From Utricularia gibba (lineage: Eukaryota; Plantae; Magnoliophyta), in assembly GCA_002189035.1 (NCBI GenBank), contig CM007989.1, positions 2,418,001-2,482,000 on the forward strand: DNA of 64,000 bases, given 5' to 3'. Below are positions 12,357 to 19,542 of this stretch, piece by piece (the stretch's first letter is position 1; each line of letters starts with the position of its first letter). The position numbers and the translations under genes were made by a program. The notes under the pieces were generated by a model. That model made no database searches. It was not told where the DNA came from and saw only the letters and a list, made by a program, of their open reading frames with translations.

Positions 12357-14277
12357 ATGTCGGAAAAAGGCAAGGAATTCAGTGAGCCCATCAAAGTTTT
12401 TCATGATAAATCAATGCGCATTCATGAATTGATTGTAATTTTAAGATGATTGTTGGCTTGGATTTTAGGGTCAGTGAGGGATTTCCTGTCTTCAGCTGTG
12501 GAAGTTGCTAAAATGGCTGGGGAGGTACCCATCCAATCAAATTCCTCCGCCTTTTATTCTCTTTGGTTTCATCATGTGTTCTGGCTGTTCCTCTCAGATT
12601 ATCCGCTCTGCGTTCTATGAAACAAAGACCGTGGAGCACAAGGGCCTGGTAACTTCTCGGCTCATCAATCTTTTTTTTTTTGTATCAATCATGATGCTTC
12701 GACTTTTCAAATTGATTCTCTCATTCTGGGCCTCTTCGTTGTGATGTTTATGAAATGTTTTTGATTGTTGTCGCGGTGGATTACTCTTTATTGTCTCGAA
12801 ACGGTAACTCTCACCATCAAGACTTTCAAAAGTAATAGTTGTGTGGTTTTTTGTTATAATGGCTTGGAGCTGATTTACTATCACAGCAAGAACAAACATA
12901 TTTGCATTTACTATTGTAGGTGGATTTGGTGACAGAGACTGATAAAAGATGTGAAAAGGTCATCTTCGAATTTCTGAAAAGAGAGTATCCTGATCATAAG
13001 GTCAGTTCCGATGTTTACAGTGTGAGCTTGGGCCGAATCAGAATTGACTCCATTATGAAAATGTTTCAGACACCATGTTTTGTATTTTCAATGTAATTGT
13101 TCGTGTGCTTGGCATACGTGTTGCTGATTTTAGTTCATTGGGGAAGAAACCACTGCTGCTTATGGTGCTACTGAGTTGACAAATGAACCAACTTGGCTTG
13201 TCGATCCTGTCGATGGAACGACTAACTTTGTACATGGGCACGTATTCTAAATGTTTTCAGTTGTTGATGAGCAAACCTCCATGCTGTCTATTTGAAAGGA
13301 AACAAAAAAATGCAGGTTTCCATTTGTTTGTGTATCCATCGGCTTCACCATTGACCGAATACCAACAGTCGGTGTTGTCTATAACCCAATCATCGATGAG
13401 GTAGGATGATTGTGCTTGTTTTGTTCCTCAACATGATTTTGGATCAAAACTTTCATGGTCTTTCTTCTGCACATAGCTCTTCACTGCAGTTCGGGGAGAA
13501 GGTGCTTTTCTCAATGGGAAACCAATCAAAGGTGCTTTGTTTGTATACATCTGAAATATTGGAGTCTGTTTCTATACTTGTTTAAAACTTGGAATTCCTC
13601 AGCATCATTGCAGAAGGAGCTTGTAAAATCCCTACTTGTCACAGAGGTGAGTACTACGTTACTGCAGAATGAATGCATCTGCAGGAGGCTAATACAGCTT
13701 TCATCTTCCCAAGGTGGGGACGAACCGTGAAAAAGCCACTGTGGATGCCACAACGAACAGGATCAACAGCCTACTCTACAAGGTGAATCTTCTAATGACT
13801 CCCACTTGTGTTTTTGCATTGTGGTCTGAAAAAAGATCATCATCTTGGGCAGGTGAGGTCGATACGAATGTGCGGCTCGTGCGCATTAGACTTATGTAGC
13901 GTTGCTTGTGGACGCATCGACTTGTTCTACGAACTCGGTTTCGGTGGCCCCTGGTAAGTGTTCTCCCAGCCTGCACCCACACCAGGAACCTTCTCCATCA
14001 ATCCATAAACAAGGTTCATGCCTTCAGGGACGTGGCTGCTGGTGCACTTATTGTTACTGAAGCAGGAGGCCTTGTATTCGACCCGTGAGTAACACGATCA
14101 CAACACCTTACTTTCTGATTGATGAAGCTATTACCAAGCTAAGCTCATTGTTTCGACATTTGTTTCCTTTCCGACAACAGCTCCGGTAAGGATTTCGACA
14201 TCACCTCTCAGAGGGTTGCAGCCAGCAACGGTGAGTTGAAAGACAAGTTCCTTGAGGCTTTGAGAGACGCAGAATGA
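12357..14277 (+). CDS. VTC4: Inositol monophosphatase / L-galactose-1-phosphate phosphatase (IMP/VTC4-like)
   Basis: Exons encode [66 protein letters not shown] and [10 protein letters not shown]; stop at 14275-14277. The ATG at 12357 is inferred from a short first exon. Confidence 0.9.
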
Positions 14278-14888
14278 GTGACGGCTGCCCCCAGATATCA
14301 ACACGCCAAGGGTGCTGAGTACTGATAAAAACAGTCCACACTTTCCAGTGAATTTCAGACAAGCATTCATGAAATTGATACAATTTATCATGATTTTATC
14401 ATAAAAAATGTATTGATTCAACTTCCATGTCCGGTTCAACCGGCGAAGCCATAGTATCATTTACAAAAGTGATCATCGAGTTGAAATAGATTTCCATCAT
14501 GTTCAACTCGAATTCAGAATTTTTTGAATTCGGGTTCAATAACCATTGTAAAAAATTTAAAAAATCTAAAAAAATGAAAATAATTCAACCCAAAACCACG
14601 GATAATCTATAGCATGAATTCAATCCGATTTTAAAACATTGGTTTACAATGTACATCTCCTCATTCATCATGTTATAATATTAAATTAAATAAATTGCAT
14701 CTGTATAGTAAACATGAAATTATTTTATATAACATTCAAAGTACTTTTATACATATATCCACATAATTAAACATAGATTAATACCCTATGCTCCAACCAA
14801 TAGGGGAGGTGTGGATAGGCTGCTTAGGTTTAAATGCTCCATTTATTTAGTATCCATATACACCAAACAAAGGTGACAGGGATGAGCA

Positions 14889-15092
14889 TCATGTGATTCT
14901 ACAGGAGTTGGCATTCTCAGGACTGAAAAAATCCTCGATCTTTGAGAGCGCATCGTTTCTCTCCTCCAGTAGCGTTGCTTCTATCTGGCGCGGCTGCGGC
15001 GCCGGGGCCGGGGCCGGTGCCGGCGAAGGCGGCGGTGCTGCCGGCTCTGCCTCCGCAGGCTTCTCCTTCTCAGATGGTTTGTCTTCGGACAT
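14889..15092 (-). CDS. 67-aa Pro/Glu-rich microprotein with HIPP-like C-terminus (FFSPENANSCRIT), copy 1
   Basis: GC-rich intronless ORF in AT-rich DNA; TATA-like TATTATAAAT about 45 nt upstream of the ATG; frame conserved with the two paralogues. Confidence 0.75.
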   Translation of the reverse strand: MSEDKPSEKEKPAEAEPAAPPPSPAPAPAPAPQPRQIEATLLEERNDALSKIEDFFSPENANSCRIT

Positions 15093-16110
15093 GTCTTGGT
15101 TGTGTTAGGGGCGTAATTGGCGTCCGGAAGCCCCCGAATTTATAATAATACGAAGGGGAAAAGGTGCATGTAATATGATGTGGTAAACATGAAAGGTATA
15201 TTATGAGGATGCAACATCTAGAAATAAATAATGGGGATTTTGTATCCCTAATTTTATTTATTAATTTGTCTTTTTATAACTTTTTTTTGGATTCTTTTCA
15301 GTTTTACTACTGCATTATCGAAAAATTAAAAAAAAGGTTATAAATATGTAATTTTATTTAATTTAATAAATCAAGTGGAAATTATCCTCTTAGAATCTGG
15401 GATCCATATCTAAATTCTACCCATTATTACATTTTCACCCGTTTCTTCTTTTGAGATCTCATGGAGCATCAATTCTATAGTTTTTGTTTTCTGTTCGATT
15501 TCATAAATAAAAGGATTCTTTTAATCTCATACAAAAGAAACATGTGTACTAACATTTGATATTAAAATAAAACTTGAGCACAAAACAATGGTGGGAAAAA
15601 GTGCAAATGAGGATATTGAATAATTAAATGAAAAAGAATATTATATAACATATTTTTCAGAAATTAAAAGGCATAAAATCGTAAAAATTGGATGTGTAAA
15701 ACGAATAAAATCATATAATAGTAATATTAATATATTTTTTTTCTTATTTGTTTGGTGTGTAGTTCTTCTTGAAACATCAATTTAGACTGAGGTTTTTATT
15801 TCTTTGTTTGCTTTTTTTTTTATTGGCACAAGATTATCTAAAATAACTTATTTCATATCAATAAGGTTGCAGATACTTTATTTAAAAAGTTTGATGTTCA
15901 CCATGAATTGTTTAACAAGACGGCAAGCAAATTATCTAAAAATCCCTAAATCCACATTTATTTCAATTCATGTATCAAATGTATCATATTTTAAATCTAA
16001 ATAAATTACGTCAATATAATAAATACAAATTACTTTTCAAATACTCAACCTATTTTATATATTCCATTTATATATGATCCATATACACACAAAGGTGACG
16101 GGAACGAGCA

Positions 16111-16329
16111 TCATGTGATCGTACAGCAGTTGGGATTTTCAGGATGCAACTTGTTCTCAATCTTTGATAACATATCGTCTCCATCCTCCCACATTGATGG
16201 CGGATACCGGCTCCGCTGCACTTCCGCCGCAGGCGCAGGCGCCGGCGCCGGCGCTGGCTTGTCCTCCTCCGCAGGCTTGTCCTCCTCCGCAGGCTTCTCG
16301 TTCTTAGGAGATGTTTTGGTTTCCGACAT
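16111..16329 (-). CDS. 72-aa Pro/Glu-rich microprotein with HIPP-like C-terminus (LHPENPNCCTIT), copy 2
   Basis: Same promoter and stop context as copy 1; length differences preserve the frame; ends in CaaX-like CTIT. Confidence 0.78.
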   Translation of the reverse strand: MSETKTSPKNEKPAEEDKPAEEDKPAPAPAPAPAAEVQRSRYPPSMWEDGDDMLSKIENKLHPENPNCCTIT

Positions 16330-17063
16330 ATCTTGGTACTGTTAGAAGTGCAATTGGCGTCCCTGAAGCCCCCCAATTTATAATAATACGAAAGGGAAAA
16401 GGTGCATGCAATATGATGCGGTAAACATGATATTATATTATGAGGATTTCATATTTTGCTAAAATTCCTAGCACTAAATAATGGGGATTTTGTATCCCAA
16501 ATTTTATTTATTAATCTGTCTTTTTATAATTTTTTCGATTCCTTTCAATTTTATTACTGCATTGTAGAAAAACAAAAAAAATTATAAATGTCTAATATTA
16601 TTTAATTTAATAAGCCAAGTGGAAATTATCCTTTTCGAATTCAGGATCCATGTATCTAAATTTTACCAGTTATTATATTTTTAACCGTATCATTTTCATT
16701 CTCGTTGAGATCTCAGGAAACATTAATTCTATGATTTTTTTTGTTAGATTTCGTAAATAAAAAGATCCTCTTAATCTTATATTATGTATTTTCATCAAGA
16801 GGAAGAAATATAAAATCATGATTGAATATTCAAAATGGTATCATACTAGAGTGTCGGACACGTACCAAACAAATAGTACATAACAGTATGTGTAAATTTA
16901 ATAAATTAATATTAAAACTATACAATTTATTAATATGTAACTTTTTTCTATATCCAAAAATACTTAATTAATCCTAATCGACTTTATCTCATCCTATAAA
17001 TAATATAATTTTGGAAAATTTTATTATATAATAATAATATTTATTATTATTATTAAAAATATG

Positions 17064-17083
17064 ATATATATATATATATATAT
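17064..17083. repeat. (AT)10 microsatellite
   Basis: Perfect AT run in the spacer between copies 2 and 3. Confidence 0.85.
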
Positions 17084-17705
17084 CCTATAATAGAATAATT
17101 TATACTTCGATGTATACCATATCCATATATTAATGTGTCTACATATAATATATTCATCAACTTACATATTATACAAAAGTCGATGGGACGTAACATTTAA
17201 TATTAAAACAAAACTCGAGCTCATGACAACAATGGAAGAAAGGCCACTTAGTGAGGATATTGAATAACATAAAACTGTAAAAAATGGATTTGTAAAACGG
17301 AAAATATCATATAATTATTACGTTAATCTTAATATTTTTCTTGTTATCTGTTCAATGTGTAGTCTTTCTTGAAACATCAATTTTAAAAACGTAGATTGAG
17401 GTTTTTATTTCTTTGTTCGCTTTTTTTTTTATTGGCACAAGATTGTCTAAAATAACTTATTTCATATCAATAAGGTCACAAATGCTTTATTGAAAAAGTT
17501 TGATGTTAGCCATGAATTGCTTCATAAGATGGCAATTAAATTATATAAAAATTCCTAAATCCACATTTATTGCAATTCATATATCAAATGTATCATATTT
17601 ATAATCTAAATAAATTACATCCATATAATAATTACAAATTACTTTTCAAATACTCAACATATTTATATATGATCCATGTACACCCAAAGGTGACAGGGAC
17701 GCGCA

Positions 17706-17876
17706 TCATGTGATCGTACAGCAGTGGGCTTTCTCAAACTTGTTATCAATCTTTGATACCATTTCATCTTCATCCCCCCACGGTGGTGGCGCGGGCTGGC
17801 GCGGCTCCTCAGCCGGCGCTGGCTTGTCCTTCTTCGCAGGCTTCTCCTTCTTTCGAGATGTTTTGGCTTCGGACAT
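17706..17876 (-). CDS. 56-aa microprotein, copy 3 (MSEAKTSRKKEKPAKKDKPAPAEEPRQPAPPPWGDEDEMVSKIDNKFEKAHCCTIT)
   Basis: Translated by hand (below the ORF-track size cutoff); homologous start, stop and TATA context. Confidence 0.72.
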   Translation of the reverse strand: MSEAKTSRKKEKPAKKDKPAPAEEPRQPAPPPWGDEDEMVSKIDNKFEKAHCCTIT

Positions 17877-18240
17877 ATCTTGGTACTTTTAGGGGTGCAA
17901 TTGGCGTCCCTGAAGCCCCGCCAAATTTATAATAATACGAAAGGGAAAAGTGTATGCGATATGATGTGGTAAACATGAAATTATATTATGAGGTTTCCCT
18001 ATTTTGCTACAATTTCTGGCACTAAATAATGGGGATTTTGTATCCCTAATTTTATTATTTAAATAATAAATCACTATATATTATTAATTTACCATTTATT
18101 TGCTCCTACATGGGCCTCATGCTGTCTTAACTGACGGAAAGCAGGCCCGTGAGGAAAATCTATCAGGCCCAGGTTGGAGAGAATGTTGGACGGCGCCGTT
18201 TTGATGACATATATATCTCCTTGGATCATGGGGATTAGGG

Positions 18241-18249
18241 TTAGGGTTT
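18241..18249 (-). promoter_or_regulatory. Telo-box (TTAGGGTTT on + strand) upstream of the OB-fold gene
   Basis: Exact motif about 60 bp upstream of ATG 18307, preceded by an extra TTAGGG. Confidence 0.45.
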
Positions 18250-18306
18250 CAACATCAAATCAGTTTTGGGCAATTACTGGCGTCGGAGTCTTCCCATTTT
18301 ACTCAC

Positions 18307-19113
18307 ATGGAATCCAAAGCACCGACGGCGACGACGTCTCAGCGAAACGGTGAGCCCGCCCCCACCAACAAGCGCAGCCTGCGGAAACCGGTTTTTGTGA
18401 AAGTCGAGAGCCTGAAACCAGGGACGAACGGGCATACGCTGGTGGTAATGGTGTTACAATCAAACGCAGTTTCGAGCAAGAAGCCTAGGTCCCAGAATTT
18501 CCGTGGATCTCAAAATCAAAACGCTAAAATTGCGGAGTGCCTCGTCGGTGATGAAACTGGAACCATCCTCTTCACCGCTCGAAACGAACAAGGTTTGAAA
18601 TTTTCATGCCCTATTTTTTAAATGTTTGTATGTTGGATTTATTTCTCACTTCGAATCAACTAATTGTCCATGCCTGGAAGGATTCCGAGGGAAAGTGGCT
18701 CTTTTGGATCCTTCCTTTTACTTTGCCCGAGGAAAAGAGTTTTTCATTTTAGTTTACCCTCGTAGCGTAGTGCTACAGCCTTTTTGTTCTTCAAACAAGT
18801 GTTCAATTCGCCCCTTGCACCCTGCTCCAACCCAAGTAGCAAAGAGATGCGTAGATGAGTATATCTATCTTGCCGATCATAAATCCCCTGGTTTGATGCT
18901 TAGAAGTACTCCATGTTTGCAGTTGACCTGATGAAGCCCGGAAGCACGGTGATACTCCGAAATGCAAAGATCGACATGTTCAAGGGGTCGATGAGGCTGG
19001 CTGTGGACAAATGGGGTCGCGTTGAGGTTGCAGAACCAGCGACCTTTGTTGTCAAGGAGGACAACAATCTATCATTGGTGGAGTATGAGTTAGTGAACGT
19101 TGAAGACTCTTGA
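18307..19113 (+). CDS. Small OB-fold nucleic-acid-binding protein (At4g28440-like), 2 exons
   Basis: LRKPVFVKVESLKPGTNGHTL...AECLVGDETGTILFTARNEQ / VDLMKPGSTVILRNAKIDMFKGSMRLAVDKWGRVEV; one GT-AG intron. Confidence 0.9.
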
Positions 19114-19542
19114 AGAGAGAAAGGAAGTTCATGGTATTGGGGTTTCAGTTGTGTTGTCTTTAGGGTTTTAACATGGTATACCACAAACTTTGTTCGGGTA
19201 TACATGTTTAAGATTGGCTGCTCGGTTGATGTATCGAATATCACTTTCAAGCATGCGTATTATTATGTTTATGGGGCACAGGCTCTTACAAACTCCTGAA
19301 TCCTAGCAGAAAACTGAGGCCCTGTTTGCAAGGCACTCCTCTACTGAAACCCAAGACAGGGGCATGTGATAAAGACAACAGGCAGAAACAACTGCTGATG
19401 CATTATAAGATACAATGAAATGACAAGATGAAGCCAGATTGTCACAATGATTATCCCAAGCATTAAATTGCTTGTGCTCGCAGAAAGAATGGGAAGTGAC
19501 TCTGAGACACAAAAGAACTCTGCTGGAACCACCCAAGAGTCT

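Follow-up and report, generated by a model that had tools for sequence, protein, structure and literature searches.

The question raised by this locus is whether three short ORFs on the minus strand of the 64-kb window (the whole stretch of DNA analysed here) encode stand-alone microproteins that keep the lipid-anchored tail of a HIPP and have dispensed with its HMA domain. The ORF listing of the window contains three intronless, ATG-started frames of 67, 72 and 56 aa, referred to below as copies A, B and C.

14889-15092, minus strand: copy A ORF, 67 aa, C-terminus FFSPENANSCRIT, 6/9 against the anchored HIPP motif
16111-16329, minus strand: copy B ORF, 72 aa, C-terminus LHPENPNCCTIT, 5/9 against the anchored HIPP motif
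17706-17876, minus strand: copy C ORF, 56 aa, C-terminus FEKAHCCTIT

All three ORFs open with a Lys/Glu-rich N-terminus (MSExK.S.K.EKPA) that runs into a Pro/Ala stretch, and their GC content is 0.54-0.60 versus 0.23-0.25 in the spacers; the ORF list and translations bear out the description of these frames, including their Pro-Ala linker and C-termini, given in the initial annotation. All three copies retain a common ATG and a common stop, while copy B has gained an 18-nt tandem duplication (KPAEED twice) and copy C has lost segments of 42 nt and 6 nt, all in frame. The ORFs sit within tandem duplicates of 1.2-1.5 kb, in which whole units were duplicated with their AT-rich spacers included, and the window holds only these three copies.

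The C-termini are the reason for considering HIPPs at all. HIPPs carry the motif FSDENPNA directly before the CaaX box (PMC1929074) and typically have a Pro-rich region that links the HMA domain to the prenylation site (PMC10459601). In exact C-terminal register, identities to the anchored pre-CaaX motif number 6/9 in A, 5/9 in B and about 2/9 in C, from which most of the motif has gone; a score of at least 5 was reached by none of ~55,000 ORFs from 200 shuffled windows. Judged by sequence, the likeness of the tail to the HIPP pre-CaaX motif exceeds what chance would give in this 64-kb window. Cys at -4 and Ile at a2 are present in 3/3 copies (CRIT in A, CTIT in B and C), and position X is Thr in all of them versus the canonical Met of HIPPs. 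Each copy also has a PAPAPAPAP or PAPAEEP stretch in mid-ORF, which is of low complexity and hence weak evidence for the HIPP Pro-rich region. The proposed HIPP-tail identity stands in part: the register-exact likeness of A and B and the Pro-rich stretch speak for it, and Thr at X and the eroded motif of copy C against it.

The same ends could belong to an ORF family of orphan or de novo origin that has no kinship with HIPPs. The GC-rich ORF would then have arisen locally, and its ENxN-C-x-I-T terminus would resemble the HIPP tail through coincidence or because it converged on a prenylation context; we regard this reading as quite improbable. Consistent with it, an exhaustive profile search across 1.84 billion protein representatives matched only three repetitive low-complexity proteins and revealed no HIPP with significant similarity over the whole sequence, the protein language-model neighbours of copy A are bacterial low-complexity proteins (below the reliable score), and about one 6/9 match would be expected by chance genome-wide, an estimate that extrapolates the shuffles to ~1,600 windows and is not a measurement. 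What argues against it is that the two better paralogues hold complementary parts of the motif (F and S in A, P in B), pointing to a fuller ancestral match, and that the exact C-terminal register is preceded by a Lys/Glu/Pro-rich region that also fits HIPPs. In addition, the nearest language-model clusters of copy B are plant proteins named 'HMA domain-containing', although their scores of 0.76-0.77 lie below the reliable score and this HIPP link is a lead only.

Other searches for relatives likewise returned nothing. A word-based protein search with copy B as query gave no match, nor did metagenome scans with peptide patterns and with a 24-mer that is invariant among the three upstream blocks. 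Synteny was followed through the neighbouring OB-fold gene, one of two plus-strand genes that flank the array.

13601-14420, plus strand: last exons of an inositol-monophosphatase-family gene, transcribed and spliced, RNA positive control
18243-19292, plus strand: Ssb-like OB-fold gene with an intron at 18591-18920, transcribed, spliced and polyadenylated, RNA positive control

Exon 1 of the OB-fold gene leads to Lamiales orthologues at ~70% identity. At four such loci (one of Genlisea aurea, the others on three Logan contigs) the 0.35-3.1 kb upstream of the gene contain no trace of the array; a telo-box before the OB-fold gene is the sole upstream feature shared. Profile, word, metagenome and synteny searches all failed to supply the mini-ORFs with a relative.

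The claim that the ORFs lack an HMA domain is well founded, as Pfam returned nothing for the three proteins, HMA included (E up to 10), and a six-frame search of the whole 64-kb window found no HMA-like CxxC exon, upstream of the ORFs or elsewhere. These results also bear on the idea that the ORFs are final exons belonging to one or several ordinary HIPP genes, with the HMA exons further upstream. A candidate acceptor AG does occur 10-12 nt before the ATG in B and C; it is absent from A, and there is therefore no conserved splice acceptor at this position. An in-frame TAA lies 15 nt 5' of the ATG in 3/3 copies, the next gene upstream is on the opposite strand, Pfam detects no HMA signal anywhere in the window, and none of the spliced contigs of four RNA runs extends into the array. 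The terminal-exon reading is close to refuted by the in-frame TAA, the lack of an HMA exon in the window and the lack of a spliced contig, and the earlier statement that no convincing acceptor precedes the ORFs is upheld.

Conservation around the ORFs extends into the following blocks.

15093-15265, minus strand: copy A proximal upstream block, with the invariant 24-mer at 15225-15248; 86% identity to the B and C blocks
16330-16515, minus strand: copy B proximal upstream block, with the invariant 24-mer at 16475-16498; 92% identity to the C block
17877-18062, minus strand: copy C proximal upstream block, with the invariant 24-mer at 18023-18046
14839-14888, minus strand: copy A 3' block following the stop, conserved, with AATAAA ~45 nt 3' of the stop
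15710-16110, minus strand: copy B 3' flank, used as a neutral yardstick; ~89% identity to the matching flank of copy C
17300-17705, minus strand: copy C 3' flank, partner of the copy B flank

A 16-nt TATA element, CGTATTATTATAAATT, is identical in 3/3 units (15137-15152 in A, 16375-16390 in B and 17924-17939 in C), with 0.01 expected by chance. Counted by hand on the sequence, the distance from the end of TATAAAT to the ATG is 45, 46 and 48 nt in the three units, in agreement with the conserved TATA-like box that had been placed about 45 nt before each ATG. In layout units A-C look like genes, with a TATA box, a short leader, an ATG, an ORF, a stop and an AATAAA. An RY-like CATGCA adjoins the TATA box in copies A and B and hints at seed expression.

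A promoter of this kind could also serve a non-coding RNA. In such a family of snRNA-type genes, a USE-like element would stand about four helical turns before the TATA box and the ORF would be incidental. The element TTTACCACATCAT matches the plant USE consensus at 8/11 positions with a spacing roughly that of Pol II snRNA genes (PMC9845283), and the upstream block and first 3' block have outlasted the ORF in conservation. However, by our own estimate about one in three such promoters would hold an 8/11 match by chance, an Rfam scan at E = 10 returned chance hits only and no family match, the folding energy of two units is no better than that of shuffles (z = -0.5 and -0.9), and no RNA was seen over the array in the four RNA runs. 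Plant snRNA-type genes combine a USE and a TATA box with a structured, conserved RNA, and the units offer a USE-like match at 8/11 only; we consider a non-coding RNA family very improbable.

For transcription, four same-species RNA runs that cover both neighbours at a depth of 20-450 contain no contig over 14570-18061; these data are contigs of small runs, tissue not given, which show presence and not absence. The flanking genes are both covered and spliced in the same data, and the result leans against transcription of the array without deciding the matter.

The comparison of copies is similarly two-sided. The CDS diverges by 19% between B and C and by 32% between A and B, versus 11-16% in the flanks; codons at the N- and C-terminal ends, although they align well, are no more conserved than the flanks, and the ORF is less conserved than the upstream block and the first 3' block. 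Across ORF pairs dN/dS is 0.47-0.60 (p = 0.06-0.24), with no pair significantly below 1. Neutral evolution had been named as an outcome that would count against functional microproteins, and with the ORFs outpacing their flanks and dN/dS not significantly below 1 the data lean towards it, again not decisively. On the other side, each of the four ORF indels has a length divisible by three (3, 12, 42 and 6) versus 2/14 in the flanks, dN/dS in a six-frame comparison is lowest in the reported frame (tied with its codon-complement frame), differences between B and C by codon position follow the order third > first > second (18/11/7), and when neutral change was simulated at the divergence seen among the ORFs, all three frames stayed intact in <1% of trials. 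The unbroken ORFs, the in-frame indels, the lowest dN/dS, the codon-position pattern and the simulation are signs that point to coding. They are weakened because the copies are young, because two of the ORF indels fall in 6- or 18-nt periodic repeats, and because other frames of the ORF DNA are also open: one antisense frame has no stops in 3/3 copies and another sense frame has 0-1. Among the frames open in this GC-rich DNA, an ATG start is confined to the reported one.

Expression of mini-ORFs A-C or their upkeep by selection is not supported, no sign of either having been seen. Since the ORFs change at least as fast as their flanks, the motif erodes and no transcript was seen, we favour, with a probability of roughly 0.5, the reading that the units are young, whether proto-genes or relics, and that little or no constraint acts on the protein. 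They would be silent or have a narrow expression, and their ORFs would be lineage-restricted and similar to a HIPP linker and tail. We propose that a gene-like unit of 1.2-1.5 kb was doubled twice in tandem within one Lamiales lineage, probably by unequal crossing-over. In that unit a TATA box and a leader of ~20 nt precede the ATG of a GC-rich ORF, and a poly(A) signal follows the stop. The ORF resembles the final portion of a HIPP gene, with a Lys/Glu/Pro-rich linker and an FSDENPNA-CaaX tail but no HMA domain. The most likely origin, as far as the sequence suggests, is a HIPP last exon that was copied in part and gained its own ATG and promoter. After duplication the three ORFs have stayed open but have changed at least as fast as the non-coding surroundings, and each copy erodes the HIPP-like motif in its own way. 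If translated, the products could be farnesylated at the C-x-I-T end by protein farnesyltransferase and so be tethered to a membrane.

Such a tether is central to the reading in which the units are functional genes, encoding HMA-less farnesylated HIPP-tail microproteins that sit on membranes or plasmodesmata and rival full-length HIPPs for tail partners or for the prenylation machinery. We consider it unlikely, with the farnesylated microprotein role itself a putative one that we hold doubtful. The gene-like anatomy of the units, the intact ORFs with their in-frame indels and lowest dN/dS in the reported frame, and the HIPP-like tail are all in keeping with function. As farnesyltransferase substrates C-T-I-T and C-R-I-T remain candidates, Ile at a2 being favourable and Thr at X tolerated (PMC3017772, PMC12609287, PMC10320760), and the targeting of HIPPs to membrane and plasmodesmata requires the isoprenylation motif (PMC12835825). 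The neighbouring Cys in B and C may be S-acylated as well. Against this stand the four RNA runs without a transcript, a rate of protein change at or above that of the flanks, the near loss of the motif in copy C, the change from Met to Thr in all copies and the lack of a homologue among the 1.84 billion representatives; for a decoy role there is no evidence at all. That the units are expressed in an unsampled tissue or condition, with HMA-less farnesylated tails (those of B and C possibly doubly lipidated) taking up membrane or plasmodesmal sites or HIPP-tail partners and thereby modulating full-length HIPPs, seems rather unlikely. The initial annotation had added that standard annotation would miss these ORFs. 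On present evidence, leaving them out until a transcript is seen is probably right.

Among known systems, the mini-ORFs share with HIPPs the Cys at -4, the Ile at a2, an ENxN-type motif just before them in the register of FSDENPNA-CaaX, and a disordered Pro-rich, Lys/Glu-rich stretch preceding the tail. Unlike HIPPs, they have no HMA domain, carry Thr in place of the usual Met at X, show a partial motif (6/9, 5/9 and about 2/9), would give products of only 56-72 aa and have no significant whole-sequence similarity to the family. They resemble young orphan or proto-genes in tandem arrays in being lineage-restricted, short, disordered and fast-evolving, with no homologues detected and no or narrow expression, but they carry the motif of an old family, which suggests partial duplication and not birth from non-coding DNA. 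On present evidence the array is an example of a promoter-bearing partial gene copy that was amplified and then drifted, of modest interest for gene birth and death.

Plant microProteins, truncated paralogues that interfere with larger relatives, offer another parallel: the mini-ORFs are small, form a single module that echoes part of a multi-domain family and probably originated by partial duplication. They differ in that the retained module is a lipid-anchor tail with a linker and not a known dimerisation or interaction domain, and in that their expression and interference are putative. The literature searched contained no description of a lipid-anchor-only microprotein class. Should the products prove to be expressed and prenylated, they would demonstrate independent action of the HIPP tail, provide a natural tool for finding binding targets of the FSDENPNA-CaaX tail and represent a new type of microprotein consisting of a lipid anchor and a linker. 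Small CaaX proteins such as the heterotrimeric G-protein gamma subunits AGG1 and AGG2 are short and attach to membranes through a prenyl-Cys, with an adjacent Cys that can be S-acylated. The mini-ORF products would likewise be short, depend on a C-terminal prenyl-Cys for membrane attachment and possibly be S-acylated at an adjacent Cys, but they have no sequence or fold relation to G-gamma and lack its coiled coil, one short helix being all that is predicted. AlphaFold places this helix at residues 44-61 of copy B and leaves the remainder disordered (mean pLDDT 64, low confidence); any peptide translated from these ORFs would be disordered apart from a single short helix.

The array consists of three small open reading frames (copies A, B and C), bordered on both sides by plus-strand genes:

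14889-15092, minus strand: copy A ORF, ATG start, 67 aa
16111-16329, minus strand: copy B ORF, ATG start, 72 aa
17706-17876, minus strand: copy C ORF, ATG start, 56 aa
One side of the array, plus strand: last exons of an inositol-monophosphatase-family gene
Other side of the array, plus strand: Ssb-like OB-fold gene

The initial annotation had described these ORFs and read their ends as the tail of HIPPs, the plant isoprenylated proteins with an HMA domain and a CaaX end. Its description of the sequence is confirmed: the minus-strand ATG ORFs, their shared ends and the anatomy of the units were all found again. The three products are alignable over their entire length, with a common N-terminus (conserved MSExK.S.K.EKPA), a Pro/Ala-rich middle, a conserved SKI(E/D) segment and an invariant C-x-I-T end; the G+C content of the ORFs is 54-60% versus 23-25% in the surrounding spacers. 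They sit in whole-unit tandem duplicates that include the AT-rich spacers (start-to-start spacings 1237 and 1547 nt), and no fourth copy was found within the 64 kb window. No other part of the repeat unit changes as fast as the ORF middle, which resembles an unstable triplet-periodic microsatellite; in copy B an in-frame 18-nt tandem duplication (window 16246-16281, minus strand) encodes KPAEED twice. The predicted model of copy B has one helix (residues 44-61) in an otherwise disordered chain, with a mean pLDDT of 64.

In HIPPs the CaaX box is immediately preceded by a conserved FSDENPNA (PMC1929074), and a Pro-rich region separates the HMA domain from the prenylation site (PMC10459601). When identities to FSDENPNAC anchored at -12 to -4 were scored for all window ATG ORFs of at least 30 aa, copy A scored 6 and copy B 5; no other ORF among the 432 in the window exceeded 3, and in 200 composition-matched shuffles, with about 55,000 ORFs in all, a score of 5 was never reached. 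The F and S of the motif are kept in A and the P in B, E-N-x-N and the Cys are present in both, and in copy C two codons are gone and little of the motif is left. The ancestor probably matched the HIPP motif better than A or B. In a language-model comparison, copy B had as neighbours plant clusters with HMA protein names (scores 0.76-0.79, a lead only), and copy A had bacterial low-complexity proteins. An exhaustive profile search returned three repetitive proteins only and no HIPP, the expected outcome for a motif of ten residues; homology to HIPPs is therefore not proven. By extrapolation to about 1,600 windows read from this genome, roughly one 6/9 match could arise by chance genome-wide. 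What stands of the HIPP-tail proposal is a resemblance that, judged from the sequences, is real at motif level in A and B, and descent of the units from the 3' part of a HIPP gene seems likely.

The possibility that the ORFs are part of a HIPP gene was rejected. As the initial annotation had stated, the products lack an HMA domain (Pfam), and a six-frame search of the window gives no HMA-like CxxC exon. Upstream extension is blocked by an in-frame TAA 15 nt before the ATG in each unit. The absence of a convincing upstream splice acceptor was likewise borne out: the sole candidate AG, located 10-12 nt ahead of the ATG, does not occur in copy A. None of the spliced RNA contigs extends into the array.

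The three units look like genes. A 16-nt element, CGTATTATTATAAATT, is identical in all of them, and its TATAAAT ends 45-48 nt before the ATG as counted on the sequence, in agreement with the TATA-like box reported at about 45 nt. There is no upstream ATG in the presumed leader of any unit, a 30-nt block spanning the stop codon is conserved, and AATAAA signals lie downstream in each. One alternative considered is that the units produce a non-coding RNA from an snRNA-type promoter, to which a USE-like element, TTTACCACATCAT, about four helical turns upstream of the TATA box would point. This element, TTTACC(A/G)CATCAT on the minus strand (~15165-15177, ~16403-16415 and ~17951-17963), agrees with the plant snRNA USE consensus RTCCCACATCG (PMC9845283) at 8/11 positions and lies ~39 bp centre-to-centre upstream of TATAAAT, near the four-turn Pol II snRNA spacing. 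Because the units have no Rfam match and fold no better than shuffles, the USE-like match is probably due to chance. Some 135-170 nt upstream of each ATG lies the 24-nt element GGGATACAAAATCCCCATTATTTA, which is invariant among the copies and contains the palindrome GGGAT...ATCCC (15225-15248, 16475-16498 and 18023-18046; 3 observed against 0.00 expected). Between USE-like element and TATA box, copies A and B have an RY-like CATGCA (~15155-15162 and ~16393-16400, both minus strand) that is mutated in C. Elements of this kind mark seed-expressed promoters, a lead to seed as the place to seek transcripts.

A run search listed no RNA data set as containing the array. Four same-species RNA runs were compared against 13600-19400; their RNA nature is evident from GT..AG joints in both neighbouring genes and a poly(A) end at 19292. 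The neighbours are compact (visible introns 67-96 nt and 330 nt) and covered at word depths of ~20-450, and no contig falls over 14570-18061. These contigs come from small runs of tissue not given, and the negative is therefore real but weak. At 14287, within a stretch of Cs in the inositol-monophosphatase-family 3'UTR (stop codon 14274-14276), every one of the four runs has a C more than the assembly, which probably contains a homopolymer error there.

Neither a word-based protein search nor metagenomes yielded a relative of the mini-ORFs. In the literature, a limited search turned up no account of HMA-less HIPP-tail proteins. With exon 1 only as query, the best relatives of the OB-fold gene are from Lamiales (Phtheirospermum, Sesamum, Paulownia, Rehmannia and Genlisea, ~70% identity), which places the source plant in that order. 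DNA upstream of the orthologous gene in Genlisea aurea and three Logan contigs (loci L001-L004) shows no trace of the array, the sole element common with the window being a telo-box (AAACCCTAA repeat) that immediately precedes the OB-fold gene (window 18225-18251; L001 1195-1219; L002 253-270; L003 267-284; L004 3049-3075). A single tissue-specific transcript or conserved orthologue would sharply raise the interest of the array.

The initial annotation had further proposed prenylated microproteins, possibly acting as decoys. Arabidopsis farnesyltransferase has little selectivity for the last residue (PMC3017772), Thr being among the tolerated X residues (PMC12609287); in yeast, substrate choice is restricted mainly against charged residues at a2 and against Lys, Pro or Arg at X, and Ile at a2 is favourable (PMC10320760). 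The CTIT and CRIT ends pass these published rules, which makes their farnesylation plausible. HIPPs depend on their isoprenylation motif to localise to membranes and plasmodesmata (PMC12835825).

Several features of the divergence speak for coding. The same ATG and stop are retained in 3/3 copies, indels are in-frame in 4/4 cases inside the ORFs (3, 12, 42 and 6 nt) versus 2/14 in the flanks, the reported frame has, jointly with the codon-complement frame, the lowest dN/dS of six (0.47-0.60), B-C differences at codon positions 1/2/3 number 11/7/18, and neutral simulation at the ORFs' own divergence left all three intact in <1% of trials. On the other side, no pair has a dN/dS significantly different from 1 (p = 0.06-0.24), 2/4 ORF indels fall in 6- or 18-nt periodic repeats, and other frames are also open. 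The ORFs outpace their flanks (B-C 19% vs 11-12%; A-B 32% vs 14-16%), and even at the ends, where the alignment is good (first 15 and last 21-23 codons), conservation is no better than in the flanks. The copies are young, and three ORFs staying open at the flank rate is not very surprising (a chance of about 0.1, roughly estimated). Strong purifying selection is therefore unlikely, and weak or no constraint fits best. On two points that the initial annotation had itself named as refuting its proposal, absence of transcription and neutral evolution, the results lean against function, and the functional claims (expressed, selected, prenylated, decoy) find no support; the prenylated-microprotein reading is unlikely. 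The reading we favour, at a probability of about 0.5, is that a HIPP-3'-end-like unit was copied in tandem and that the copies are young, restricted to one lineage and under little if any constraint at the protein level. Transversions exceed transitions in the ORFs (20:13 and 40:25), whereas in the flanks transitions predominate, as is usual (28:16 and 27:15).
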